From sequence record NC_074653.1: DNA of 18,212 nt; one strand, 5' to 3'. Position 1 is the stretch's first letter; the number at the start of each line of letters is the position of its first letter. This document shows, in pieces, positions 4,755-17,562 of the stretch. Under the pieces are notes generated by a model, which saw nothing but the letters and a program-made list of their open reading frames with translations, was not told the DNA's origin and did not search any database. Both the position numbers and the translations under genes were made by a program.

Positions 4755-5486
4755 ATGGCTCGACTACAAGGAAACGCCAAAAGACCAACGTGGCTAGCTG
4801 CGGTTATTGTGGGCCTCATAATTCTGTTAGCCTTATGGGCCTACTTACTACCTAAGGGCGGTTCAGGTGGCGGTGGTGGCGGTGGTGGAGGTGGTACTAC
4901 TACTACAGCCCCAATGCCAGCGGTGTACCCCACGGGCGATATTTATAACGGATACAACTTAATCCTCTTAGAGGATTTTGTTAACCCTAACGACTATCAA
5001 ATTGTCGTGTCGGCTTTCGGTGAATATTCCAGTATACCCGTTTACGGAGGGTCTGGGGTACAGGGAAACATTACGCATGAACAAGCTTACCTAAAATACG
5101 GAGGCTTTAGTATCCCAATAATAGCAATTGCCTCCACTAATTCAACACTTAAACAAGACTTTCCTGGCATGCAAATACGCCTAGACACTAGCGGCGGCTA
5201 TATCCTCTACACGGCGCCTAATCTAGCTATCTACTACAGACACATGGCTTTCAACGTGAGTGGTACCACGGTCCACGTGTGGGCCCCAGCGTCACAACTA
5301 CCTCCACAATTATCGGGCGCCTCTCACCACGTGACGATAGACCCCGCTAACGGAGTGGCTTATGTTGACGGCATGCCTGTGAAGTTAAGTACAGGTGTTG
5401 CACAGCCTCAGAGGAAAGGAGTACTACGTGCGTGGCTTGTCATGACAAGCGTGCCAGGGACCTATACGTTAACCATTAATCCATAA
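4755..5486 (+). CDS. Membrane-anchored surface/virion glycoprotein with poly-Gly linker (243 aa)
   Basis: N-terminal TM helix, GGS-G10-T4 linker, beta-rich ectodomain, sequons NIT, NST and NVS. Confidence 0.8.
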   Translation: MARLQGNAKRPTWLAAVIVGLIILLALWAYLLPKGGSGGGGGGGGGGTTTTAPMPAVYPTGDIYNGYNLILLEDFVNPNDYQIVVSAFGEYSSIPVYGGSGVQGNITHEQAYLKYGGFSIPIIAIASTNSTLKQDFPGMQIRLDTSGGYILYTAPNLAIYYRHMAFNVSGTTVHVWAPASQLPPQLSGASHHVTIDPANGVAYVDGMPVKLSTGVAQPQRKGVLRAWLVMTSVPGTYTLTINP

Positions 5487-7132: not shown

Positions 7133-7849
7133 ATGCGTAAAATACCTATCCCGCTGTTAGTGGCCGCGCTAGTCGGTGTGACAGCTGTTGTTGTAACATT
7201 GCGGGTGACGGTGGTACCTATCCCCGTATATGCAGACCCTAACTTTACGGGACCAATACCTGCAAATATTGGTTCCGCATATTGGAAAGGCGGGTTCACT
7301 GAGGCCCAATTCTTTGCAAATACCACAGTGGATTACAGGTATTTCTATGGGGCCGCTATCGCGGTCTATGCGCCCAAAGGTATTCCTAACGCCACCATCG
7401 TTCGCAATTCTTACGTTAACAATTTAGGCGACTTTATTCAGTTCATTAACTTAACCTCAGGCGTCTACTTAGTCACCTACTATCCAGGTGGCTATTATAT
7501 TGTCGTGAAGTTAGTACCCACTGGGGTTAATGGTTTTTACATAGGACAAGCGCTCAACACTAATGAAATCCAAGTGGTAAATAAGATCAACACAAATGCA
7601 CATTATACGCTGACTGGGAGTGGCTATGACGCCACAAGTGGCAAATTCTTTGTTGCCTACCTAAGCGATACAGGCTCTTCGAATACAATTCTCATGCCTG
7701 CGGCGGGCCAAGGTACTAGCAATACCTTCACTATCAAAGGCTATGACGTATCTCTCAATGTCAACGGCGTCCCTATAGTGGTGAGATACGTCACGGGCGT
7801 GGCTATAATTCCCAGGTCTGACACTAAAGTCACAATTTACGTAAGGTAA
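7133..7849 (+). CDS. MRxIPIPL-family anchored surface protein, paralog 1 (238 aa)
   Basis: MRKIPIPLL plus a hydrophobic helix, beta-rich Y/T/N/G ectodomain, sequons NFT, NTT, NAT and NLT. Confidence 0.85.
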   Translation: MRKIPIPLLVAALVGVTAVVVTLRVTVVPIPVYADPNFTGPIPANIGSAYWKGGFTEAQFFANTTVDYRYFYGAAIAVYAPKGIPNATIVRNSYVNNLGDFIQFINLTSGVYLVTYYPGGYYIVVKLVPTGVNGFYIGQALNTNEIQVVNKINTNAHYTLTGSGYDATSGKFFVAYLSDTGSSNTILMPAAGQGTSNTFTIKGYDVSLNVNGVPIVVRYVTGVAIIPRSDTKVTIYVR

Positions 7850-7885
7850 ACCGTTAGACTTTTTTTATTCCATTTCTTAAACGGC

Positions 7886-8167
7886 GTGAAGTATTTGATA
7901 AGAGGCAAAGGATATGAGATGATTATAGAAAAGAACAGAAAGTATTTCGTGGCTAAGATGATTTGCGTCAAGGTGGCGCTTAACGTAATTGCCTGTTTAC
8001 AATATGACAAAGGGTGGAAACCGATACCCAGAAAAGTGTTTGAGGAGGTGAAAACTAGCGGTAAGGTAAAGGTGTTGGAAATGGCTAGCAATGTACCTAT
8101 ATGTCCCTTTTTACCATTTCTAGCTCTTTCGGCTAGCGAGGTAGTTGATAAGGTGAAAAACGCTTAA
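7886..8167 (+). CDS. Small basic hypothetical protein (93 aa)
   Basis: Non-overlapping ORF that fills the gap, Lys-rich. Confidence 0.7.
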   Translation: MKYLIRGKGYEMIIEKNRKYFVAKMICVKVALNVIACLQYDKGWKPIPRKVFEEVKTSGKVKVLEMASNVPICPFLPFLALSASEVVDKVKNA

Positions 8168-8191
8168 ATAATACTTAAGACAGCTTACTTA

Positions 8192-8917
8192 ATGATGCTA
8201 CCTCCAGGTACGGGACTTTTAGGCCTCATTGCTATTGGCATATTCAACAGGCGCGCTATTCCTATCGCTCTCATTACACTTTTTGTAAGCGGCGCTTTAG
8301 CGGCTAAGGCCCCACAATATTACGCCTACTTTACGCCGCTTATATATTCAGCCATTGCTCTTTACGCGCTAAGACAAGAGGAAAGGGTGATAGAAAGAGT
8401 AATAGGTCTATTGCTGGGGCTGTCCATAATTTGGGGCTCTGACAATGCGGCAATTGCTGACGCTCTTAGGAATATATCAATAACGCTTATCACTCCATTC
8501 TTTAAGGCTGTCTATGATGTCCTAGGCCTCTTAGGTTTCGGCGTGGCGCTTACTTCACTGTTAGCATGGTCTCTCTTGTCACCACGGCTAATGGCGTTGG
8601 AAGAGCCGCTATTGGCTATGGGTTATGTCGTGTTAGGGTTCACTCTATTGTCAGGCATAGTCAACGGTGTCCCAGACTACTTACGCTTAGCCTTAGCTAT
8701 TGCGTTATTGAACCAGTTTTCACGGGCCCTTAGAGGTAATCTGGAAGCCCTAGGAGAGGTGGCCCCAGTACTATTCCTCCTAGGTGAACTTATCCCAGCC
8801 ACCCAGTTGACAGCTTTAGGTGCTGTTGTGGCGATTATAGAATTAGCATTGGGGATACTAAACAGAAAGCACTTAGCGGGTTCAGCAATGTGGGCCACAG
8901 CAATAACATTAGTGTAA
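8192..8917 (+). CDS. Polytopic membrane protein (241 aa)
   Basis: Multiple TM segments. CTTAAATA lies at 8163-8170. Confidence 0.85.
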   Translation: MMLPPGTGLLGLIAIGIFNRRAIPIALITLFVSGALAAKAPQYYAYFTPLIYSAIALYALRQEERVIERVIGLLLGLSIIWGSDNAAIADALRNISITLITPFFKAVYDVLGLLGFGVALTSLLAWSLLSPRLMALEEPLLAMGYVVLGFTLLSGIVNGVPDYLRLALAIALLNQFSRALRGNLEALGEVAPVLFLLGELIPATQLTALGAVVAIIELALGILNRKHLAGSAMWATAITLV

Positions 8918-8918
8918 A

Positions 8919-9821
8919 ATGCTGACTAGACTATTCCTTTACACAACTCACGCGATAGCGCTAGTTTCAGCATTAATAGTATTGGCTATATTCGGTATCT
9001 CACTCTCCTCCCTCGTGGCGGCCGCGCTAGTATACGCATATGTCTATGGCTTGATACAATTTTGGACAAGGCATGAATTGCCGCCACCTCTTTTAGTGTT
9101 CTTATATATAATTGCATTTTTCGGCCTCATAGGGGAGACCCAGTTTATAGTGGCGGCCTCCGTAATAGTGGCGGCGTTTATGTTGAAAGAGCTGAAAATT
9201 GTAAAGGGTAATCCTCTTGACGCGGCAGTCAGTGGATTAAAGCTAGCTGTCTTAGGAGGCTTACTCCGCATAGGATTATTGACAGTAGCCCCTATTTATG
9301 AGGCCCTCAAGGTCCTAAGACGTTCTCCGATTTTAGCCATTACAATGCTGTTATCATTTCTACTCACGATATTTGCGCTTCTCTCCTCACTACTACATAT
9401 AGAGTATACAGTCCTCTCCACAGGACCGCTAAGCGGTGTATACGGTTTTCTGGACCCAGGTAATCCGTTTTTATGGGCTGGCGTAATTGCATATGAGGAG
9501 TTGATAGGTAGGCCTATTCCCATTGCCGACGCATTTTTCGTGCTATTGCACTATCCCTCTAGGGCCGTATACGCTTTTGATAAAATCACCAAAGACCCTC
9601 TATTGGCTACCGCTTTCGCCTTATTCGTGCTAACGGTAATACATATTGGGACAAGGTGGCTGTGGGACCTCTATAAGAAATACGGCTTTATAGGTTCACT
9701 GTCAGGCCACGCGGTCTACAATGCTGTACTATCGGCGAATTGGACGACTTTCTTATTACTATTTGTTCTTGGAATTGCGGCTTATATCTATGAGAAAACA
9801 TTAAAATCTGAGGCGATATGA
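8919..9821 (+). CDS. CPBP (Rce1/Abi, type II CAAX) family intramembrane protease (300 aa)
   Basis: EELIGR (E193,E194,R198) = EExxxR. FVLLH (F207-H211) = FxxxH. LYKKYG...HAVYN (H264-N268) = HxxxN. Polytopic. Confidence 0.75.
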   Translation: MLTRLFLYTTHAIALVSALIVLAIFGISLSSLVAAALVYAYVYGLIQFWTRHELPPPLLVFLYIIAFFGLIGETQFIVAASVIVAAFMLKELKIVKGNPLDAAVSGLKLAVLGGLLRIGLLTVAPIYEALKVLRRSPILAITMLLSFLLTIFALLSSLLHIEYTVLSTGPLSGVYGFLDPGNPFLWAGVIAYEELIGRPIPIADAFFVLLHYPSRAVYAFDKITKDPLLATAFALFVLTVIHIGTRWLWDLYKKYGFIGSLSGHAVYNAVLSANWTTFLLLFVLGIAAYIYEKTLKSEAI

Positions 9822-10213
9822 CAGCCATGTACAGATACCTAATACTCCTTCTAGCCACAGTGTTAGGCATAGGGACCGCCACGGTGATTACCTCATATAA
9901 TACGCTTGACGGCGTCTATAACGGGACAGTCCTTATCTACAATGGTACCTATTACCTCGTGCAGGGAAGAGAGTTAAACCTTAGTAATGTGGTGATAGCT
10001 AACGGTATAGTTGTTGTTAACGGAAACGGATACGCTATAGCCTCTAAGCTTAGCTGTGAAACTAAGAGTGGCATATTAAACGGCTTAATAGTCCTAAAAG
10101 GAGGTGGCTATGTGGTTTTAGGGGGACAAGAGATTAGGGTGGGTGACTACGTTGTCATTAATGGTACGGCGCTATTAATGAACGCGTGCGTGTATCATTC
10201 TTTAAAACGATAG
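9818..10213 (+). CDS. Membrane-anchored beta-hairpin-rich glycoprotein (131 aa)
   Basis: ATGA overlap with the protease gene, N-terminal TM, repeated NG turns, NGT x3 and NLS sequons. Confidence 0.8.
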   Translation: MTAMYRYLILLLATVLGIGTATVITSYNTLDGVYNGTVLIYNGTYYLVQGRELNLSNVVIANGIVVVNGNGYAIASKLSCETKSGILNGLIVLKGGGYVVLGGQEIRVGDYVVINGTALLMNACVYHSLKR

Positions 10214-10241
10214 GTTTTTTAACTAAACTATAATCCTTTTT

Positions 10242-10661
10242 GTGAGGCGCCTAATTGCTATCATATTGCTAGTAGTATTGCTGATATACTCCATATACAT
10301 GGCTTATTCCCAACCACGTTCTCCGAACGTTGTTATTGTGAGGCCTCAACAAGCACAGCCAGAAACCCAGACTGCCACTCCCCCTTCTGCACAGGTTCAG
10401 CCACTACCTCTCTTAGCCGTGTGTAATGCTATATATCTAAAGATAGGTAATACACAACTGTGCGGGACCATAACAAGCTTATTTTATACTACTACAGGCT
10501 ATCAAATTGCCATGAAAAGCGGGTGGATTAGTGGACAATTCATTATAGTGAGGCCTCCTATTTGTTCAGTCAACACTACAGGGAATGTAGTCAATATCCC
10601 ATGTGACGTGGAGGTCCTAATCCCTACGCGGCCTATAGAACCCTCCACTACCGTGTCATGA
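10242..10661 (+). CDS. Membrane-anchored protein with Q/P/T linker (139 aa)
   Basis: MRR plus TM helix, PQQAQPETQTATPP linker, 4-Cys beta domain. Confidence 0.8.
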   Translation: MRRLIAIILLVVLLIYSIYMAYSQPRSPNVVIVRPQQAQPETQTATPPSAQVQPLPLLAVCNAIYLKIGNTQLCGTITSLFYTTTGYQIAMKSGWISGQFIIVRPPICSVNTTGNVVNIPCDVEVLIPTRPIEPSTTVS

Positions 10662-10663
10662 TT

Positions 10664-10717
10664 TTTTACTGCTCGAGGTAAATTATTTCGGCGCATTTTT
10701 TACCTCGGAGAGTAAAA
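10664..10717. other. Long intergenic stem-loop/inverted repeat
   Basis: TTTTACT (10664-70) pairs with AGTAAAA (10711-17). GAGGTAAA (10675-82) pairs with TTTACCTC (10699-706). CTC/GAG pairs between them with bulges. Confidence 0.6.
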
Positions 10718-10820
10718 CCCCCCCTCAATAGACCCTAGTGAGACAGCTTCAAGAAAGCCACACCTGTTTTCTGGGGAAAGAAGTAAGTTATCTTTTTTTA
10801 TACCTTCCCTTTTTAATACC

Positions 10821-11042
10821 ATGGTATTAGAATTGTTTAAGGCTAAGGAGAGGCCTCCCATATGCATAGTTGAACCAATGCCTAATGGGGACTTTACGCT
10901 ACAATGTGACGTCACTAAAGAGACCGCTAGACGGTTAATTGATAAGGAGAAGGTCTGTGTCATTGAGTTTGACGTGAAGAGCGGTAAGCCGATATCCTAT
11001 TGTGGTCCAGGTAAAGACGTGGTTACTAGGATATTCCTGTAA
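10821..11042 (+). CDS. Small 4-Cys hypothetical protein (73 aa)
   Basis: TTTTTATA about 27 nt upstream. TAATG overlap with the next gene. Confidence 0.75.
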   Translation: MVLELFKAKERPPICIVEPMPNGDFTLQCDVTKETARRLIDKEKVCVIEFDVKSGKPISYCGPGKDVVTRIFL

Positions 11043-11509
11043 TGTGGCGCAAACTAACGGTTTTTGTCTACCTCATTTTTTTGGGAATTTCATGGCTACA
11101 ATTGACGTGGTTTTTCGGATATCCTAGCGTGGGCGGTTTCGTGTTGACGCCTAGCGCGCACCCCTATATCCCTCCACTAAGCCTTGTTATCACAGTCCCC
11201 TCAAACATGTGTGAAGGGTGGGCGGTGAAGCTAGTAAAGGCGAATTTTTACGGCGTTGGTATATACCTCCCTGTGGTCCACTATTTCGCAAAGGCTGGCT
11301 CTATAACCTATGAGGTTTTCAATTATTACCAATTCGGTGACGTGGTGGGCTATTTTAGGGCCCTCCTATTCCCTCAATGGACCGCGATACCTTATAATGG
11401 GACATGCGTGGCTAAGGTGGTGTTTATAATTCCTGCACCTGTCGTGATTCTAATTAGTATAATAGCGCTAACAACGCGGTTTTACCTAGGCCTAAAGCGA
11501 ATTTGGTGA
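11042..11509 (+). CDS. Membrane protein with N- and C-terminal TM helices (155 aa)
   Basis: Hydrophobic termini, beta-rich middle with 2 Cys and an NGT sequon. Confidence 0.8.
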   Translation: MWRKLTVFVYLIFLGISWLQLTWFFGYPSVGGFVLTPSAHPYIPPLSLVITVPSNMCEGWAVKLVKANFYGVGIYLPVVHYFAKAGSITYEVFNYYQFGDVVGYFRALLFPQWTAIPYNGTCVAKVVFIIPAPVVILISIIALTTRFYLGLKRIW

Positions 11510-11532
11510 CATTTAATCACGGAGAAGAAAGA

Positions 11533-11540
11533 TTTATAAA
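11533..11540 (+). promoter_or_regulatory. Strong consensus TATA box
   Basis: TTTATAAA preceded by purine-rich GAGAAGAAAG, starting 29 nt before ATG 11562. Confidence 0.7.
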
Positions 11541-11561
11541 GCACGGCTTGTGACTAGTTTA

Positions 11562-11819
11562 ATGTCAACTAACTTAGGCGAATACCCCGACAGGATTCAG
11601 GGTACACCATACGTTGAACAGGTGGAGGAGAAGTATAAGCTGAAAGTGGCTATCGGAATTTGCAATGCTCTCCGTGAGGCCGACCCCGAGAGCTTTCGTG
11701 CGCTAGGCGGTTTTGAGGAGTGTGTTAGGGCCGCGTCAAGATGGGCTGACTACAATTTTGACATGTGGAAAGTCAATTGGCCTAAGAGTGTGAGCGCCGC
11801 TATTACCGCGTTCAAATAA
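11562..11819 (+). CDS. Small alpha-helical protein (85 aa), candidate major nucleocapsid protein
   Basis: Monocistronic unit with consensus promoter and T-tract terminator. ATG 11562 fits leaderless spacing better than 11550. The structural role is inferred. Confidence 0.7.
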   Translation: MSTNLGEYPDRIQGTPYVEQVEEKYKLKVAIGICNALREADPESFRALGGFEECVRAASRWADYNFDMWKVNWPKSVSAAITAFK

Positions 11820-11820
11820 C

Positions 11821-11834
11821 CTTCCTTTTTTCTT
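11821..11834 (+). terminator. Oligo-T/pyrimidine archaeal terminator
   Basis: CTTCCTTTTTTCTT immediately after the stop codon. Confidence 0.6.
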
Positions 11835-11871
11835 ATCGTTAGATTTTTTAGACTAAAAAGTAAGCCTCACA

Positions 11872-12207
11872 ATGAGAATTATCACCCTATTGAAAGCGCT
11901 TTACGGTAAGCGTGGGTACTATTACTATAGTGGCCTTGTGGCTAAAATTGCAGGTAAAGAGTGTCTATGCAGGCTAGTACACGCGATACTCATATATCAA
12001 CTTAAGTACCACAAGAGGCTTTTACAGCCAGAGGACGAGAAAAATCTTTATATTGAGTTTTTGAGGGACAATTGTGGAGAGCATTATCAGCAATTTATGG
12101 ACGTACTTAATGGAAAGCTTGACATTGATAGTGCAATTCATAGCCTCATTAATAGAGTCCCCCATAGCTGCGATAATCACAGGGTCAATCTTAGCGCTAG
12201 CGGGTAG
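11872..12207 (+). CDS. Hypothetical protein (111 aa)
   Basis: ATG 27 nt after TTTTTAGA. The 3' end overlaps the next ORF. Confidence 0.7.
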   Translation: MRIITLLKALYGKRGYYYYSGLVAKIAGKECLCRLVHAILIYQLKYHKRLLQPEDEKNLYIEFLRDNCGEHYQQFMDVLNGKLDIDSAIHSLINRVPHSCDNHRVNLSASG

Positions 12208-12292
12208 GTACGTTGTCTACGGCGTAGGCCTTACGCTTATTGCCTATGGAGTTATACGTCTAGCCTTGGCATTTTTTGGTATTAGCCTTTAG
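12110..12292 (+). CDS. Small two-TM membrane protein (60 aa)
   Basis: MESLTLIVQF...AFFGISL is strongly hydrophobic. ATG 12110 is preferred over 12074. Confidence 0.6.
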   Translation: MESLTLIVQFIASLIESPIAAIITGSILALAGRYVVYGVGLTLIAYGVIRLALAFFGISL

Positions 12293-12355
12293 ATACTTAA
12301 ACGCAGCGTGTTGACAAATTTCAAAATCTCGGTTTTTCCTTTTTGACAAATATTA

Positions 12356-12370
12356 AAGATGCGCTTTATA
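12356..12370 (+). repeat. Exact 15-bp copy of left-end element AAGATGCGCTTTATA
   Basis: Identical to 342-356. Preceded by two TTGACAAAT direct repeats (12311, 12343). Confidence 0.85.
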
Positions 12371-12417
12371 GACCCCGCGTATCGCTCGAGGACTAAATAA
12401 GCTACTAAATTCTTAAA

Positions 12418-12431
12418 TATACTATAGTATA
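12418..12431. promoter_or_regulatory. Perfect 14-bp palindrome TATACTATAGTATA, candidate operator
   Basis: Lies between the TATA-like CTTAAATA (12412-19) and GTG 12437. Confidence 0.55.
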
Positions 12432-12436
12432 ATAAC

Positions 12437-12727
12437 GTGGCTAAAGAAATTAAGGAAAAGGAGGGCGGCTATATAAGAGCCAGCGAATTACTACACCAAA
12501 TAGACGTTGACACGCTTAATGCTATGGCTAAGCACTTAGCCACTTCTCCGAAACTGGCTTTTCGCACTATCCGTGACGTTCTCTCACAGCATGGCATATA
12601 CGTGTCTCGGATTATGGAATTGATAGTGGGTGACAAGGCGATAGAAATTTTCACCCATAATTTGTACATTAGGCTAGTCCCCTACAAAAACGGAGAGTGG
12701 GACGTGGAGGCAAAAATACTCAGATAA
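12437..12727 (+). CDS. Hypothetical protein, possible wHTH DNA-binding protein (96 aa)
   Basis: TLNAMAKHLATSPKLAFRTIRDVLSQHGI resembles an HTH and is followed by beta strands. The fold call is tentative. Confidence 0.7.
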   Translation: MAKEIKEKEGGYIRASELLHQIDVDTLNAMAKHLATSPKLAFRTIRDVLSQHGIYVSRIMELIVGDKAIEIFTHNLYIRLVPYKNGEWDVEAKILR

Positions 12728-12755
12728 GCTTATTTATTCGCACACTTTCTAGCTT

Positions 12756-13559
12756 ATGAGAATACCTATACCGCTAATATTCGCGGCCGTTATAACGCTT
12801 ACCTCAGTCACGTTAGTATTTAAGGTGGCGGTGACGGTTTTAGGAAGTTATGACCCCTCCTATGCGGCCTTTAACGGTACTCACGTTGTTTCTCTGGCTT
12901 TACCCTCCACGACTTACGTATACGTCTACGGTGGAGGAGGTGGGACAGCCACTTATGCAGGCGCTACCACAACCTACCAATATCAGTGTTTCGGTTCAGC
13001 ATGCACCACAGGGAGTGATTTCGGCGCTTATTTCCCTGTATTGATTACTGTCAATAGCGGAAGCTATCCCTTTGATACCACCATAGAGGTTTCTCAGCCT
13101 TATGGGCGCACTACCTATAAGGTAAGGGTAGTGCTATACAGTGACGGAAATGGGTGGGTGGCAGGACAGTCTGCCACGAGTCTGGGTGCGGGACAAATAG
13201 GGTATAGTATACCTGTGAAATGGTATCAGTCCTCTGGTGGACGAATATGGATATATCCGATAGACCGTGGCCGTATAAGTAGGAGTCTATCAGAGGGGTG
13301 TAGTGTGGCGGGACTGGGAGGCGCCTTATATAAATACGTGGTGTCAATTCAGACAGGTCAGATGTATGACTGCTCAAGCGCTTCATGGGGGAGTGGTACT
13401 TTCAAATTCTCCACGATAGCCTCCTCCACTACCACAGCCACGTGGTCCATAGGGTGGATTACACAGCGTGTTAGCGGTTCTAGCTATGACATTACTATTC
13501 ACTACGCGCCCCTTATTTTCATTTCTCCCGCTACTCACTTCACCGTAAAGCCGCAATGA
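12756..13559 (+). CDS. MRxIPIPL-family anchored surface protein, paralog 2 (267 aa)
   Basis: MRIPIPLIF plus a hydrophobic helix, G/S/T/Y-rich ectodomain, G5 run, 4 Cys. Confidence 0.85.
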   Translation: MRIPIPLIFAAVITLTSVTLVFKVAVTVLGSYDPSYAAFNGTHVVSLALPSTTYVYVYGGGGGTATYAGATTTYQYQCFGSACTTGSDFGAYFPVLITVNSGSYPFDTTIEVSQPYGRTTYKVRVVLYSDGNGWVAGQSATSLGAGQIGYSIPVKWYQSSGGRIWIYPIDRGRISRSLSEGCSVAGLGGALYKYVVSIQTGQMYDCSSASWGSGTFKFSTIASSTTTATWSIGWITQRVSGSSYDITIHYAPLIFISPATHFTVKPQ

Positions 13560-13699
13560 TAATTTGCCACAAAAACAGGCAAATAATTGAAACCTATGCT
13601 GAAAAAGTCTATCGGTACAAAGACCTTTATTGCGCGGAGGTGGGGGACATAATCGCTGACTTCATTATCCGCTTAGGCGGCGTTTATACTAAAGAATAA
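13556..13699 (+). CDS. Small hypothetical protein (47 aa), not in the ORF track
   Basis: ATGA overlap with the upstream stop. MIICHKNRQIIETYAEKVYRYKDLYCAEVGDIIADFIIRLGGVYTKE fills the gap up to the next TATA box. Confidence 0.65.
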   Translation: MIICHKNRQIIETYAEKVYRYKDLYCAEVGDIIADFIIRLGGVYTKE

Positions 13700-13702
13700 A
13701 AC

Positions 13703-13710
13703 TTTTAAAA
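13703..13710 (+). promoter_or_regulatory. TATA box
   Basis: TTTTAAAA starts 28 nt before ATG 13731. Confidence 0.55.
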
Positions 13711-13730
13711 TAACACTTCTTCTTTTATTC

Positions 13731-14138
13731 ATGGCGAAAAACTCTAAATTCCAAAAATCGGCTGACGGCTTAGAATACTACATAGGGTCCGTATTACGGA
13801 TACTGTTCAAAAACGGTTCTATGGACATTATCTTATTGCAAGACGGCGTTTATAACTTCTTAGGTGAGTGGACCTACAACGGGCGCAAATACCTATGCGC
13901 GGTGGAAAAGCGCTTACCTATGCTAGTGATTAGCGCCTCCCCACACTCAACAGAAACACCAGTTGAGGCCTCATATTACAAAATGTTCGTGAACAAACCT
14001 GTCGTGATTATAAACGAGGGTCCGAAAATTGAGGGCGTGTTAATGTCCGTCTATCCTCAAGCGCTTTACGTTCAAACTAGCGAGGGTCTCGCGATTATCC
14101 CAGTAAGAGGACTAATAGCTGTATGCAGTCCACAATGA
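13731..14138 (+). CDS. Probable tandem Sm/Hfq-like (SH3-type barrel) protein (135 aa)
   Basis: Two halves: YYIGSVLRILFKNG... and MFVNKPVVIINEGPKIEGVL...IIPVRGLIAV, with Sm1/Sm2-like patterns. Confidence 0.55.
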   Translation: MAKNSKFQKSADGLEYYIGSVLRILFKNGSMDIILLQDGVYNFLGEWTYNGRKYLCAVEKRLPMLVISASPHSTETPVEASYYKMFVNKPVVIINEGPKIEGVLMSVYPQALYVQTSEGLAIIPVRGLIAVCSPQ

Positions 14139-14740
14139 AGGAGTTAATTCCCATATTCCAGGACGTTATAGACCAAGTAACAAGCGTCTTACCTTGTGAA
14201 GTGGCTAGGGTATACCCAGCTGAAGTGGCTGGGGTTCCCAGCCTTGTTGTCTATCTTGAGTGCTTATGGGCGGGCGGGGTGTATTTTCTAAAGGTATATA
14301 GGAAATTTGATAAACAAGGGCGCTTAATGCACCCTCTCCCAGTGATAGGGATATCCCACTACACGCTAAGAGAGTCTGAAGAAGTGTTCTATCCAGCGCT
14401 TGACATTGACGGTAAACACATGCCAGCTTGTCGTGACGTGTTATTACAATTCCGCTATTATAGCGCGAGGCATAAGAGGTGGACCTATCACGTGGTCCTT
14501 AAGGGTTCAACTCACCCCTTAGAGGCTGTTAGAAAGATGTCCCTATGTGGAGATGATAAGAGGCATTTAGAATACGCTATACGTAGGTCTCTTCACCACT
14601 TCTTTCCCTATGATTTCGCGATTTTGCGAATAACCCCATTGCCAGGTGAGAAGTGGGTGCTTGAGTACGCTAATGAAAGCGATGATTTAGTGGCCCTTCA
14701 CCTATACCTAAGAAAGGCCCTATGTTATGCCTATGAGTGA
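14135..14740 (+). CDS. Hypothetical protein (~201 aa)
   Basis: ATG 14135 forms an ATGA overlap with the upstream stop. The track start at 14123 is the alternative. Confidence 0.8.
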   Translation: MKELIPIFQDVIDQVTSVLPCEVARVYPAEVAGVPSLVVYLECLWAGGVYFLKVYRKFDKQGRLMHPLPVIGISHYTLRESEEVFYPALDIDGKHMPACRDVLLQFRYYSARHKRWTYHVVLKGSTHPLEAVRKMSLCGDDKRHLEYAIRRSLHHFFPYDFAILRITPLPGEKWVLEYANESDDLVALHLYLRKALCYAYE

Positions 14741-15446
14741 GAGGGAAATCGCTGAAACAACAACAGAAATTCCTGAGTTAGAGGCCGATATCAAATTGGA
14801 CGTAGAGCCAGAAATTTATGAGGCTGAAGAGGCTGAAGAGGCCTCACCTCCAGAAAAGGTATACGGTGAGGCATGGGAAAAGGGCTTTAGGAGAAGTGAC
14901 GTGACCCTCACTAAAGACTGGCTTAGAGGCTGGCTAAGGGGGGCCTCAGTCTTAAAGGCTATCGCTCTTGAGGCGTGGTTAACTGGGTACTTTAGGGCTA
15001 AAGGTATAGATAATGCAGAGGAGATGGCTAAGGCAATAACAGCGGCCACGTTTTCCGAAATTCCTAACGTTCAGGCGCAATACATTGAGTCACGAAATGT
15101 CAGCATCTCAAGAGAGGCGATAACCGCGCTATATCAAGAGGCTAACAGACGGCAATTAGTCCCCTATCTCTCGCTTATTTGGGACGCTGTTAGGAGGGAC
15201 AGTAAGTGGTACATTAGCCTAACCCCGGGAGAGCTGTCTAGAATGCTTGACATTATTACGGAGGTAAAGGAGAGAAATCAGCCGCCCTCTCAGGCCGCAC
15301 AATGGATTATAAAGGAGTTCTCATATAGGAGTCCGCGTTCACTATATTTCAATGCTTATTATGTGGGCCGCGTCACGGGTGACCCTTATGTGCAAGAAGT
15401 AGCGCGTGAACTATCTCGCGTTGGGCGCCGCGCTAGGGCTTCATAA
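14727..15446 (+). CDS. Helical hypothetical protein with acidic N-terminus and basic C-terminus (239 aa)
   Basis: Overlaps the upstream stop (start 14727 or 14733). E-rich first 45 aa and an RVGRRARAS tail. Confidence 0.85.
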   Translation: MPMSEREIAETTTEIPELEADIKLDVEPEIYEAEEAEEASPPEKVYGEAWEKGFRRSDVTLTKDWLRGWLRGASVLKAIALEAWLTGYFRAKGIDNAEEMAKAITAATFSEIPNVQAQYIESRNVSISREAITALYQEANRRQLVPYLSLIWDAVRRDSKWYISLTPGELSRMLDIITEVKERNQPPSQAAQWIIKEFSYRSPRSLYFNAYYVGRVTGDPYVQEVARELSRVGRRARAS

Positions 15447-15478
15447 TTAAATTTTTATTAACGTCACATTTTTATACA

Positions 15479-16249
15479 ATGAGGCGTATTCCAATTCCAC
15501 TAATATTGGCGGCGGTAATTGCTGTGGGCGTGACAGTCACTATTATATTCCAGATAACAGTACTGACTCCTCCCAGCGCGGTGGTAGTGCTAGTACCACA
15601 AGGCTCTTCAACTGTCACTTATCAATTTGTGGCCATAGACGTGAAACACGCGGCATTTCCAATAGGAATGGGCTTAATGCAAATTACTTACAATACCACC
15701 AATTTCTACTACTACAATGTTACTGAGTTGTGGTCCCTAGCGGTTCCCGCCTCTAGATACATTAATATGACTGGTACCTATTCGGTAAATACTGGGACTA
15801 GAACTTACTCTTTTAACGTATTTGACTGTGGTAATGTCGTGGTTGTGGGCTATTTAACCACAGTTTACATAGGACAATGGGTAGATTTCGGAGGCTTTAA
15901 AGTGGCGGTACCTGTCAACTTCACAGCCTCTCAAGACCAGTTGACGTGTGCTAGGAAATACATGGGTTATTACAATTTAGCTGGCGTTAATATCTTTAGC
16001 CCCAGAATTGACTACTATGCTTTCGACGGTACCTACATCTACGTCTATTATGACCGTGTGGATACCTCTACCTATTACTTCAGATATGACAGACTTTCAT
16101 ATAAGCCTACCACGCTAAGCAATAATGCGGTGATAGGATACAAAGTCACGGACCCCGGAACTGGGGTAGTCTACTTAGGAGGATTTTACGTGGGCGCATT
16201 TAGCGCCACCTCAAGCGGAACCTACGTGGTAGGCGTCAAGGGACAGTAA
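15479..16249 (+). CDS. MRxIPIPL-family anchored surface protein, paralog 3 (256 aa)
   Basis: MRRIPIPLIL plus a hydrophobic helix, Y/T/V-rich ectodomain, sequons NTT, NVT, NMT and NFT. Confidence 0.85.
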   Translation: MRRIPIPLILAAVIAVGVTVTIIFQITVLTPPSAVVVLVPQGSSTVTYQFVAIDVKHAAFPIGMGLMQITYNTTNFYYYNVTELWSLAVPASRYINMTGTYSVNTGTRTYSFNVFDCGNVVVVGYLTTVYIGQWVDFGGFKVAVPVNFTASQDQLTCARKYMGYYNLAGVNIFSPRIDYYAFDGTYIYVYYDRVDTSTYYFRYDRLSYKPTTLSNNAVIGYKVTDPGTGVVYLGGFYVGAFSATSSGTYVVGVKGQ

Positions 16250-16278: not shown

Positions 16279-16446
16279 ATGCCGAAAACAAATTCCAATG
16301 GGCCGAATAAACTAATCGAAATACTAAAAGCGCTAAGAATTGAGGCCGACTACGGGTTTATGCCTGGGTACACTATCTACAAAATGATACGCGGAGATTA
16401 TGAGGAATTAGACAAGGCAATTAGGAGGTTTAGGAAACATGATTAA
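16279..16446 (+). CDS. Small helical protein (55 aa), not in the ORF track
   Basis: MPKTNSNGPNKLIEILKALRIEADYGFMPGYTIYKMIRGDYEELDKAIRRFRKHD. It has its own TATA box and an 8-nt overlap (ATGATTAA) with the next gene. Confidence 0.75.
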   Translation: MPKTNSNGPNKLIEILKALRIEADYGFMPGYTIYKMIRGDYEELDKAIRRFRKHD

Positions 16447-16990
16447 CAACACCAATTACGTGGTGGTAGGCGGCGTCAAAATATGGAGAATAGGCGATAA
16501 ATACCTCATTGAGAAAAAGCGTTCATATTTCGCGCGCTTATATAAGAGCGTTTTAGATATAGTTTCAGAAAAGCCAGTCACTAGCAATTACATTGTAAAA
16601 ACAGCTAACGTACATAAACATGTTTTGTACACTCTCGAGGGCTTAATCCACAAATTTGACATGGGCGCTTTCTTTGTATGGTATAAGGACCCCATAGCTA
16701 GCATCTCTCAACTCCTAAAATTAGGATACTATCCTAAGGACTACACGCTTAAGCTAGTCCACACGATAGCTAAGCATATATGCAATTGTGACGCGAAATC
16801 CCACACTTTCTCTGTCAGCGTGAAGACCCTCAGGAATATCTACAACCTCAATGCGCACCACAGGATAATCGGACATATTCTCTTAAAACTAACGGAGGAA
16901 ATTGGCGGACAGCCTATACCTAGGCGTAATGGTTATGTCTATGTATTTGATAAGTATAAGGTTTCGGCGTGGTGTGCGAAAACATGGTGA
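16439..16990 (+). CDS. Basic hypothetical protein, possible wHTH domains (183 aa)
   Basis: Coupled to the upstream ORF. VLDIVSEKPVTSNYIVKTANV and VSVKTLRNIYNL...RRNGYVYVF are wHTH-like. Confidence 0.75.
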   Translation: MINNTNYVVVGGVKIWRIGDKYLIEKKRSYFARLYKSVLDIVSEKPVTSNYIVKTANVHKHVLYTLEGLIHKFDMGAFFVWYKDPIASISQLLKLGYYPKDYTLKLVHTIAKHICNCDAKSHTFSVSVKTLRNIYNLNAHHRIIGHILLKLTEEIGGQPIPRRNGYVYVFDKYKVSAWCAKTW

Positions 16991-17052
16991 CCGAGGTACG
17001 GCGTTACAATAAAGTATAAAAGTATTTAAACCCCCGATTTTTATTTTAACTT

Positions 17053-17562
17053 ATGAACCCAAAAACACCAGACCCAAAAATAATAGACCCCCAAACCAGT
17101 TCCTGTAAAAGGCTACTAAAGTACACGGATGCGCTCTTGAGAGAGGAGATTGACTACCTCGCGTGGTTTGATGCGGTGTCTGAGGACCTCCATCTGCTCA
17201 GAATTGTTGCCAAGGCCTACGCAATTAGCGTGGATTTAGATGAGGAATACAGATTTCCAGCGGTGATAATGTACCTATTCTCTGAGTGTTCGATTCCCGA
17301 GATGGGTATTCGTGCAGTTAAACACCTTGACCCAGGAGTAATGGTATTATTTGACGCAGAAATTGCCAGCAAGCGTAGAGAGTTATGTCCAAAAATCGAG
17401 GTATACACTGTGCTGACTCACGACGGTACTCTTATCACAAGAACTAAGGACGGAGATGAAGTTGTGGATCTAGACCCTATATGTATCCACGCTTCAGCTG
17501 TTACACCGGAGGATGCTAGATGTAAGCCCACATATGTTCCCAACAAATTGGGATATGCCTAA
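17053..17562 (+). CDS. Hypothetical protein (169 aa)
   Basis: TTTAAA at 17025-17030 with an A-rich upstream element. Pro-rich N-terminus. Confidence 0.8.
   Translation: MNPKTPDPKIIDPQTSSCKRLLKYTDALLREEIDYLAWFDAVSEDLHLLRIVAKAYAISVDLDEEYRFPAVIMYLFSECSIPEMGIRAVKHLDPGVMVLFDAEIASKRRELCPKIEVYTVLTHDGTLITRTKDGDEVVDLDPICIHASAVTPEDARCKPTYVPNKLGYA

Follow-up and report, generated by a model that had tools for sequence, protein, structure and literature searches.

Among viral envelope glycoproteins, influenza neuraminidase and the paramyxovirus attachment proteins are examples of the type II signal-anchor kind. The receptor-binding proteins of phages combine a conserved N-terminal module with C-terminal modules that are shuffled between close relatives. 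Here we compare with these systems the products of three genes, gp12, gp23 and gp28, of Pyrobaculum spherical virus 2 (PSV2; Globuloviridae; host P. arsenaticum), the complete genome of which (MN876845, 100% identity) makes up the 18,212-base stretch of DNA that was analysed (the window). A sequence-only reading of the window had placed the three open reading frames (ORFs) at 7133, 12756 and 15479, which is correct, all on the + strand, and had taken them for a family of interchangeable surface-display cassettes. We find the three genes to be paralogs scattered over the genome; their products have a constant anchor at the N terminus and C-terminal domains that diverge strongly. In our preferred explanation, which we regard as probable, they are old paralogs of one globulovirus-specific family, a trio of type II, N-glycosylated envelope proteins that diverged vertically.

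Globuloviruses are among the least understood viruses. According to their profile by the ICTV, the international committee for virus taxonomy, the virions are enveloped, measure 70-100 nm, carry round protrusions of ~15 nm and contain three major structural proteins; infection is chronic and non-lytic, and the genomes show "several examples of gene duplication". The paper describing PSV2 found the closest homologs of VP1-3 in Pyrobaculum spherical virus (PSV), predicted membrane-spanning regions in 13 ORFs and obtained an HHpred annotation for only four proteins; it puts the share of globulovirus proteins without database similarity at ~98%, does not contain the word "paralog" and mentions VP3 once. 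In the PSV2 record gp12 is annotated as "virus coat protein VP3", and gp23 and gp28 as hypothetical. Neither the GenBank records of PSV and PSV2 nor PHROGs or Pfam group VP3 and the two other proteins as one family, and scans of gp12, gp23, gp28 and the nearby gp08 against Pfam, PHROGs and NCBIfam gave no match except phrog_34425 for gp23.

The relation among the three proteins lies in their N termini. In BLASTP comparisons among gp12, gp23 and gp28, the alignment was limited to residues 1 to ~26-36, at 39-58% identity (E 7e-6 to 2e-5); profile-profile comparison of the families, using shallow profiles, gave E values of 5e-10 to 3e-8, with only the first ~30 residues aligned confidently. The same start is found in VP3, ORF270 and ORF282 of PSV and in ORF23, 24, 26 and 31 of the virus TTSV1, as seen in a scan of the three isolate genomes. 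A hidden Markov model (HMM) of the anchor scored 14.5-73.7 bits for the 10 family members of PSV2, PSV and TTSV1 (gp12, 52.2; gp23, 57.9; gp28, 42.8), and the best of the 108 other annotated proteins among the 118 in these genomes reached 6.5 bits. The shared MR(K/R/-)IPIPL start and the hydrophobic stretch after it, which the sequence-only reading pointed out as a helix, are thus real and far beyond chance, and the three proteins are paralogs through this anchor.

We assigned proteins to the family by an N-terminal [RK]-h-P-h-P-[LM]-x-x-A followed by ~20 uncharged residues, together with a match to the anchor HMM. The consensus of 81 unique anchors is [RK]-I-P-I-P-L-(I/L)-(L/F)-A-A-A-V-A-V-G-x-V-V-T-I-x-I-Q, in which P+1, P+3 and A+7 are invariant. 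Small residues recur along the helix at i/i+4 spacing, A+7 with A/G+11 and position +9 with G/T/S+13. From the N-terminal basic residue to the next R, K or Q the uncharged stretch counts 20 residues in gp12 and gp23 and 21 in gp28, so that the LRVTV, FKVAV and FQITV segments would form the outer end of a segment of membrane-spanning length. They had been read as a strand with the pattern basic/polar-x-V-T-V; the letters are present, but AlphaFold2 (AF2) models of gp12 and gp23 have no strand there and a predicted local distance difference test score (pLDDT) below 50. A short Pro-rich juxtamembrane linker and then a beta-domain, putative in gp28, follow the anchor in all three proteins.

Full-length comparisons identify the counterparts of each protein. 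The best match of gp12, in both directions, is PSV VP3 (CAG25638; UniProt Q6ZYI4; 30% identity over 263 columns, E 8e-17), which the PSV GenBank record labels a structural protein, and gp12 also lies upstream of VP2 (gp12-gp13-gp14 in PSV2, gp14 being VP2; VP3 directly 5' of VP2 in PSV). The gp12 model shares the fold of PSV VP3 (Foldseek TM 0.69). Because the full-length matches of gp23 and gp28 are instead ORF270 (34% identity, E 3e-34) and ORF282 (28% identity, E 6e-14), these two proteins are paralogs and not VP3. All three PSV proteins carry the same N-terminal anchor as their PSV2 counterparts. The genes for the second and third proteins are adjacent in PSV, whereas gp24-27 stand between them in PSV2.

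Homolog searches returned 16-23 relatives per protein from hot-spring metagenomes and metagenome-assembled genome bins, and the contigs of these relatives together with a metagenome scan yielded 33 further loci. When the anchor was removed from the resulting 94 anchor-bearing ORFs, BLAST grouped the ectodomains into three clusters that were not linked to one another at E<1e-5, beside three TTSV1 singletons. The clusters are class A (VP3-like), class B (gp23, ORF270 and TTSV1 ORF26) and class C (gp28 and ORF282), for which 29, 54 and 49 sequences, respectively, were considered. An anchor-only profile run against 1.84 billion (1.84e9) representative proteins gave 32 hits at E<=1e-3, two of them repeat proteins; the other 30, proteins of 240-280 residues or pieces of them, have the anchor at residues 2-10, and every one classifies as A, B or C. 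Scans of IMG/VR returned TTSV1 alone, and GTDB representative genomes scanned with the class-B alignment contained no relative. On these search results, the anchor is confined to globulovirus-like elements, where it occurs with a few ectodomain classes that form a closed set.

The classes are stable in position. On every long Pyrobaculum-type contig the genes follow the order gp08-type gene, A, further genes, B, C. The PSV2-like contigs L008-L010 are syntenic gene for gene, with the same class at the same position, and the PSV-like contigs likewise keep the class. Copy number ranges from 3 to at least 6 family members per genome, and PSV-like metagenomic genomes (L005, L026, L027, L031, L004) have lineage-specific duplications in the form of pairs of class A and gp08-type genes, tandem B-B genes or repeated B-C pairs. 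An extra class-C paralog at L004:12992-14278 and L005:13416-14150 has another residue in place of the second anchor proline (R-I-P-L-T-L-L); since no stop codon intervenes, the gene caller fused the L004 copy to an upstream DUF5658-like membrane protein.

The ectodomains had been called unrelated and not alignable. They are indeed not alignable by BLAST or with shallow profiles, which gave no signal when the ectodomains alone were compared, but a colinear similarity of A and B appeared after the profiles had been enriched with metagenomic and representative-library sequences. With enriched profiles, hhalign aligned A and B over nearly their full length with a score of 29.8, compared with 13.1 +/- 2.3 for column shuffles, 16.9 +/- 1.2 for shuffles of 10-column blocks (0 of 30 reached 29.8) and 13.1-13.5 for reversed alignments. 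We modelled gp12 (pLDDT 84, predicted TM-score 0.79) and gp23 (pLDDT 85.5, predicted TM-score 0.83) with AF2, each from its class-specific alignment, so the two models are independent. Both ectodomains, mostly above pLDDT 90, are predicted to be all-beta with a helical segment in mid-domain. Along the A-B sequence alignment the DSSP states of the models agree at 65.9% of positions, with helix on helix; circular shifts gave 46 +/- 4.8% and at most 59%. A Foldseek search of BFVD with the gp23 model retrieved the class-A protein PSV VP3 with E 1.1e-7 and probability 1.0 (template modelling (TM) scores 0.43/0.45); this equals the match of gp23 to its own BFVD entry (TM 0.44), and TM scores of 0.08-0.18 were obtained for unrelated full-length rows of that list. 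A and B are thus probably homologous, to judge from profiles and models, and share a strongly diverged fold. This is the simple divergence that the sequence-only reading had itself set against its proposal of unrelated middles.

Plain divergence also fits the rates. Within classes, identity is 0.57-0.65 in the anchor and 0.40-0.53 in the ectodomain, and between classes the anchors are 37-46% identical; because the anchor is only moderately more conserved within a class, ectodomains in the twilight zone between classes are to be expected. The fold of gp12 and gp23 has no convincing solved neighbour. No significant match emerged when PDB sequence profiles were searched with the alignments of the three classes, and the best PDB row in Foldseek for the gp12 model was 2pel_A, a legume lectin (E 3.8e-3, probability 0.21, TM 0.16). 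Legume lectins and other concanavalin A-like beta-sandwiches resemble the gp12 model in being all-beta and of ~230-240 residues, but its top PDB rows are not significant (E >= 3.8e-3, probability 0.2-0.3, TM 0.16-0.17).

A role in surface display, as suggested by the sequence-only reading, is plausible from the VP3 orthology of gp12, from conserved N-x-S/T sequons and from fast divergence. Each class has at least one invariant or near-invariant sequon at the start of the ectodomain (Table 1), and the sequon density of gp12 and gp28 is ~3 times the proteome average. In class B, C182 and C206 of gp23 are invariant among the 54 sequences. Identity to the nearest relatives is 69-82% for gp12 and 68-76% for gp28, against 85-92% for most genes, as expected of exposed, host-interacting proteins. 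In the comparison with L008, L009 and L010, gp01, gp17, gp31 and gp32 join gp12 and gp28 as the most diverged genes; they lie at the ends of the genome and in the region of gp16-17, and most other genes are 85-95% identical.

Archaeal N-glycosylation takes place outside the cell. This and the positive-inside rule together point to a type II signal-anchor with an external domain. We therefore picture each family member as two or three N-terminal residues including R or K, a transmembrane segment opened by P-x-P-L-x-x-A, the linker and a ~200-residue ectodomain predicted to be all-beta. The positively charged N terminus would stay inside and the anchor uncleaved (N-in/C-out); the host Sec system would insert the protein, and the ectodomain would be N-glycosylated outside the cell. 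Helix-helix contacts in the membrane, mediated by the common anchor, may gather the family members into the viral envelope and possibly oligomerise them there, where the outward ectodomains could serve host recognition or entry. The middles would have diverged from one ancestor faster than the anchor. A trio of envelope glycoproteins is, in our view, the best explanation because it combines the anchor, the sequons and their density, the divergence and the structural record of VP3.

Table 1. Positions in the window of the three anchor-family genes, their anchors and conserved asparagines, and of two further genes discussed in the text
Feature	Position	Strand	Description
gp12, class A (VP3 ortholog)	7133-7849	+	238 aa; N-terminal anchor and modelled all-beta ectodomain
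gp12 anchor, residues 1-28	7133-7216	+	MRK-IPIPL, uncharged I4-L23, then R24-VTVV
gp12 sequon N37-F38-T39	7241-7249	+	N37 invariant, F38 and T39 at least 90% conserved (29 class-A sequences)
gp12 second invariant Asn, N86	7388-7396	+	class-A alignment
gp23, class B (PSV ORF270/TTSV1 ORF26 ortholog)	12756-13559	+	267 aa
gp23 anchor, residues 1-27	12756-12836	+	MR-IPIPL, uncharged I3-F22, then K23-VAVTV
gp23 sequon N40-G41-T42	12873-12881	+	N40 and T42 invariant (54 class-B sequences)
gp28, class C (PSV ORF282 ortholog)	15479-16249	+	256 aa
gp28 anchor, residues 1-28	15479-15562	+	MRR-IPIPL, uncharged I4-F24, then Q25-ITV
gp28 sequon N72-T73-T74	15692-15700	+	N72 at least 90% conserved in class C
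gp08 ("class D")	4755-5486	+	membrane-anchored, beta-rich; basic N terminus, transmembrane segment, poly-Gly then poly-Thr linker
gp15	8919-9821		multi-pass membrane protein; hypothetical in GenBank; not among the four HHpred-annotated PSV2 proteins

Several observations weigh against the envelope trio as we describe it. ORF23, 24 and 31 of TTSV1 bear the anchor and could not be assigned to A, B or C. The relation of class C to the others is marginal at best: A-C scored 21.4 in hhalign against 16.1 +/- 2.4 for block shuffles, one of 30 reaching that score, and B-C was null against the shuffle controls. In BFVD the gp12 model found only its own entry and PSV VP3 (Q6ZYI4; E 3e-16, TM 0.69/0.66), and the entries of gp23 and gp28 were not retrieved. 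The TM scores of 0.43-0.45 between gp23 and PSV VP3 are below the usual same-fold threshold of 0.5, and part of that Foldseek score may come from the shared anchor. The public BFVD models of PSV2 proteins are probably of low quality, a limit on any fold search based on them; the entries for gp12 (A0A6M3VX41) and gp23 (A0A6M3VZD7) differ from our models (TM 0.44-0.47, root-mean-square deviation 17-19 A) despite 97-100% sequence identity. Evidence for presence in the virion exists for VP3 only, from the annotation of the PSV record and, for PSV2, by homology, and the ICTV text puts the three major proteins in the nucleoprotein core and not explicitly in the envelope.

It also weighs on this account that the N terminus could be a cleavable Sec signal peptide, in which case virions would lack the anchor and the mature proteins would be secreted or peripheral. 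The layout is that of such a peptide, with a hydrophobic stretch behind a basic n-region, and some members have small residues ~10 positions past the stretch (VYA↓D in gp12, IVA↓D in PSV VP3; the arrow marks the putative cleavage site). However, the uncharged stretch of 20-21 residues, which continues further, is long for an h-region, and class A shows no conservation at the putative -3/-1 positions (other members read PIHT↓D and VPVV↓D). Signal peptides typically evolve fast, whereas the anchor, with its invariant P, P and A, is the best-conserved part across the paralogs. We consider cleavage unlikely.

Alternatively, class A alone may be in the virion, with B and C acting in the host membrane, for example in egress or the formation of budding sites, in superinfection exclusion or in receptor masking. 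Neither the B nor the C gene lies near the VP3-VP2 block, and a modification of the host membrane would be expected since infection is chronic and non-lytic. Against this, the anchor is common to VP3, B and C and otherwise unique, which points to a common destination, and minor virion proteins are easily missed on gels. We judge this division of labour unlikely as well; the envelope trio would place B and C beside VP3.

The proposal of the sequence-only reading was different: conserved N- and C-terminal strands would pair into a stalk that displays interchangeable, unrelated receptor-binding domains and possibly polymerises into filaments. Its attraction is plain from the constant anchor joined to ectodomains that BLAST cannot align, from the three anchor-bearing TTSV1 proteins with orphan ectodomains and from a weak common C-terminal strand motif. 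It could also draw on L026, where adjacent class-B (10001-10810) and class-C (10839-11666) genes have identical 24-residue anchors at 86% nucleotide identity and ectodomains that cannot be aligned; this may be a local gene-conversion event. Yet the three classes are stable and syntenic: we found no locus at which close relatives carry different classes, among PSV2-like contigs, PSV-like contigs and database hits, and hence no mosaic of anchor and ectodomain. The classes are vertically inherited, positional ortholog groups that take in every anchor-bearing protein found apart from the three TTSV1 orphans, and A and B are related in profile and in fold. In 107 of 117 cases an anchor has its nearest neighbour within its own class; the anchors of B and C resemble each other most (~0.6 identity). 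Since B-C anchor identity is similar within genomes (0.64) and between them (0.58), there is no general homogenisation or exchange, and we rejected concerted evolution of the anchors within a genome as a general effect. The best reading is that the divergence of the ectodomains is old and vertical, and swapped cassettes on a stalk are very unlikely.

The stalk itself fares no better. In the monomer models of gp12 and gp23, which we read as secondary structure, residues 1 to ~26 have pLDDT below 50 and form only a short helix, with no strand and apparently no packing on the domain; because the anchor is of low confidence and strandless in both, pairing of N- and C-terminal strands has no support. 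Nothing was found in favour of polymerising virion filaments. The last strand had been described as similar in the three proteins. The C termini of the gp12 and gp23 models do end in a predicted beta-strand, but the resemblance is weak: profile scores of the C-terminal 12-residue windows are -2.5 to 8.7, against ~40 for the anchor, and although they place among the best 0.01-3.5% of window pairs, this is not compelling given the shifts allowed. A post-hoc motif near the end, h-[TA]-[IV]-x-P, occurs in 5 of the 118 proteins, all of them from classes B or C or from the gp08 family.

A further filament model, which sees the proteins as pilin-like subunits that a prepilin-type peptidase would process, is extremely improbable: in outline, with a short charged N terminus, a hydrophobic helix that is conserved and a beta-rich domain that varies, they are like archaeal type IV pilins and archaellins, but the invariant P-x-P at the helix start is foreign to pilins, the prepilin-peptidase motif ([KR]-[GA]) is absent (in 81 of 81 anchors the position after the basic residue holds I, L, F or V, and P-x-P comes next), searches of Pfam, NCBIfam and PDB sequences gave no pilin or archaellin match, and globulovirus virions are described with round protrusions and no filaments.

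Two neighbouring genes had also been drawn into the display system. The product of the ORF at 4755, gp08, was said to end like the three paralogs. The C-terminal motif does occur in its family as well as in B and C, but gp08 lacks the anchor (anchor HMM, -0.6 bits) and belongs to a separate family, with PSV ORF253 (53% identity) and TTSV1 ORF27 as relatives. Class A and the gp08 family scored 24.2 in hhalign against 16.3 +/- 3.2 for block shuffles, which none of 30 reached; this is marginal, and comparisons of B and C with gp08 were null. On these profiles, the gp08 family may be a distant relative of class A outside the anchor family. Its C terminus is conserved as Y-x-F-T-I-N-P, and its gene always lies upstream of class A and is co-duplicated with it on some contigs. 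In TTSV1 (L003), ORF30 (16600-17073, 157 aa) is apparently truncated at the N terminus; the frame extends to an upstream ATG (~16363-17073, + strand, 236 aa) and then includes an N-terminal hydrophobic segment. From end to end the extended product fits the ectodomain HMM of the gp08 family (E 1.4e-13), and so it would be a second gp08-type paralog beside ORF27. We also considered it as a gp08-type domain on the family anchor and rejected this at an anchor HMM score of 2.6 bits.

The second neighbour is gp15, which had been named as a protease belonging to the same system. Its motifs E193-E194-x3-R198, H211 and H264-x3-N268 occur in this order and are invariant in 8 orthologs from PSV-like, PSV2-like and TTSV1 genomes (among them L002:13909-14856, L003:6365-7219 and L004:6238-7185). 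The order fits the pattern of CPBP (CAAX-protease-like) intramembrane proteases, EExxxR, FxxxH and HxxxN. The CPBP-like motifs are kept, but support from HMMs is absent: searches of Pfam and PDB HMMs gave no hit even at E <= 10. One may speculate about a functional link between gp15 and the anchor. An extended version, which we consider distinctly unlikely, would have A, B and C form a hetero-oligomeric spike, perhaps the ~15-nm protrusions, joined by the small-xxx-small pattern of the anchor, with P-x-P-L-x-x-A as a sorting or maturation signal read by a virus membrane protein, for which gp15 would be the best candidate. If true, this would be the N-terminal counterpart, in an archaeal virus, of sortase-type systems.

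In conclusion, we report here a likely new, family-restricted example of membrane-anchored viral surface glycoprotein paralogs, whose invariant anchor motif is unusual and whose fold has no relative among solved structures. VP3 and two further conserved genes per genome, with three to five family members in relatives, provide a concrete set of candidates for envelope and host-recognition proteins, and the family-specific anchor offers a means of detecting others of this kind in metagenomic data. The analysis also contributes two confident models of this all-beta fold and corrects the tempting view of the ectodomains as swappable cassettes. Compared with phage receptor-binding proteins, the family is similar in having a conserved N-terminal module, very different C-terminal domains and several copies per genome; it differs in that its classes are fixed, syntenic and co-diverging with the genome, and whereas the phage module docks on a virion protein, the globulovirus anchor is a predicted membrane helix. 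Influenza neuraminidase and the paramyxovirus attachment proteins share with the predicted topology of the family a very short internal N terminus, an uncleaved transmembrane anchor and a glycosylated, outward C-terminal ectodomain. There is no kinship in sequence or fold with these proteins, and the presence of several paralogs with one highly conserved anchor is a feature of the globuloviruses.

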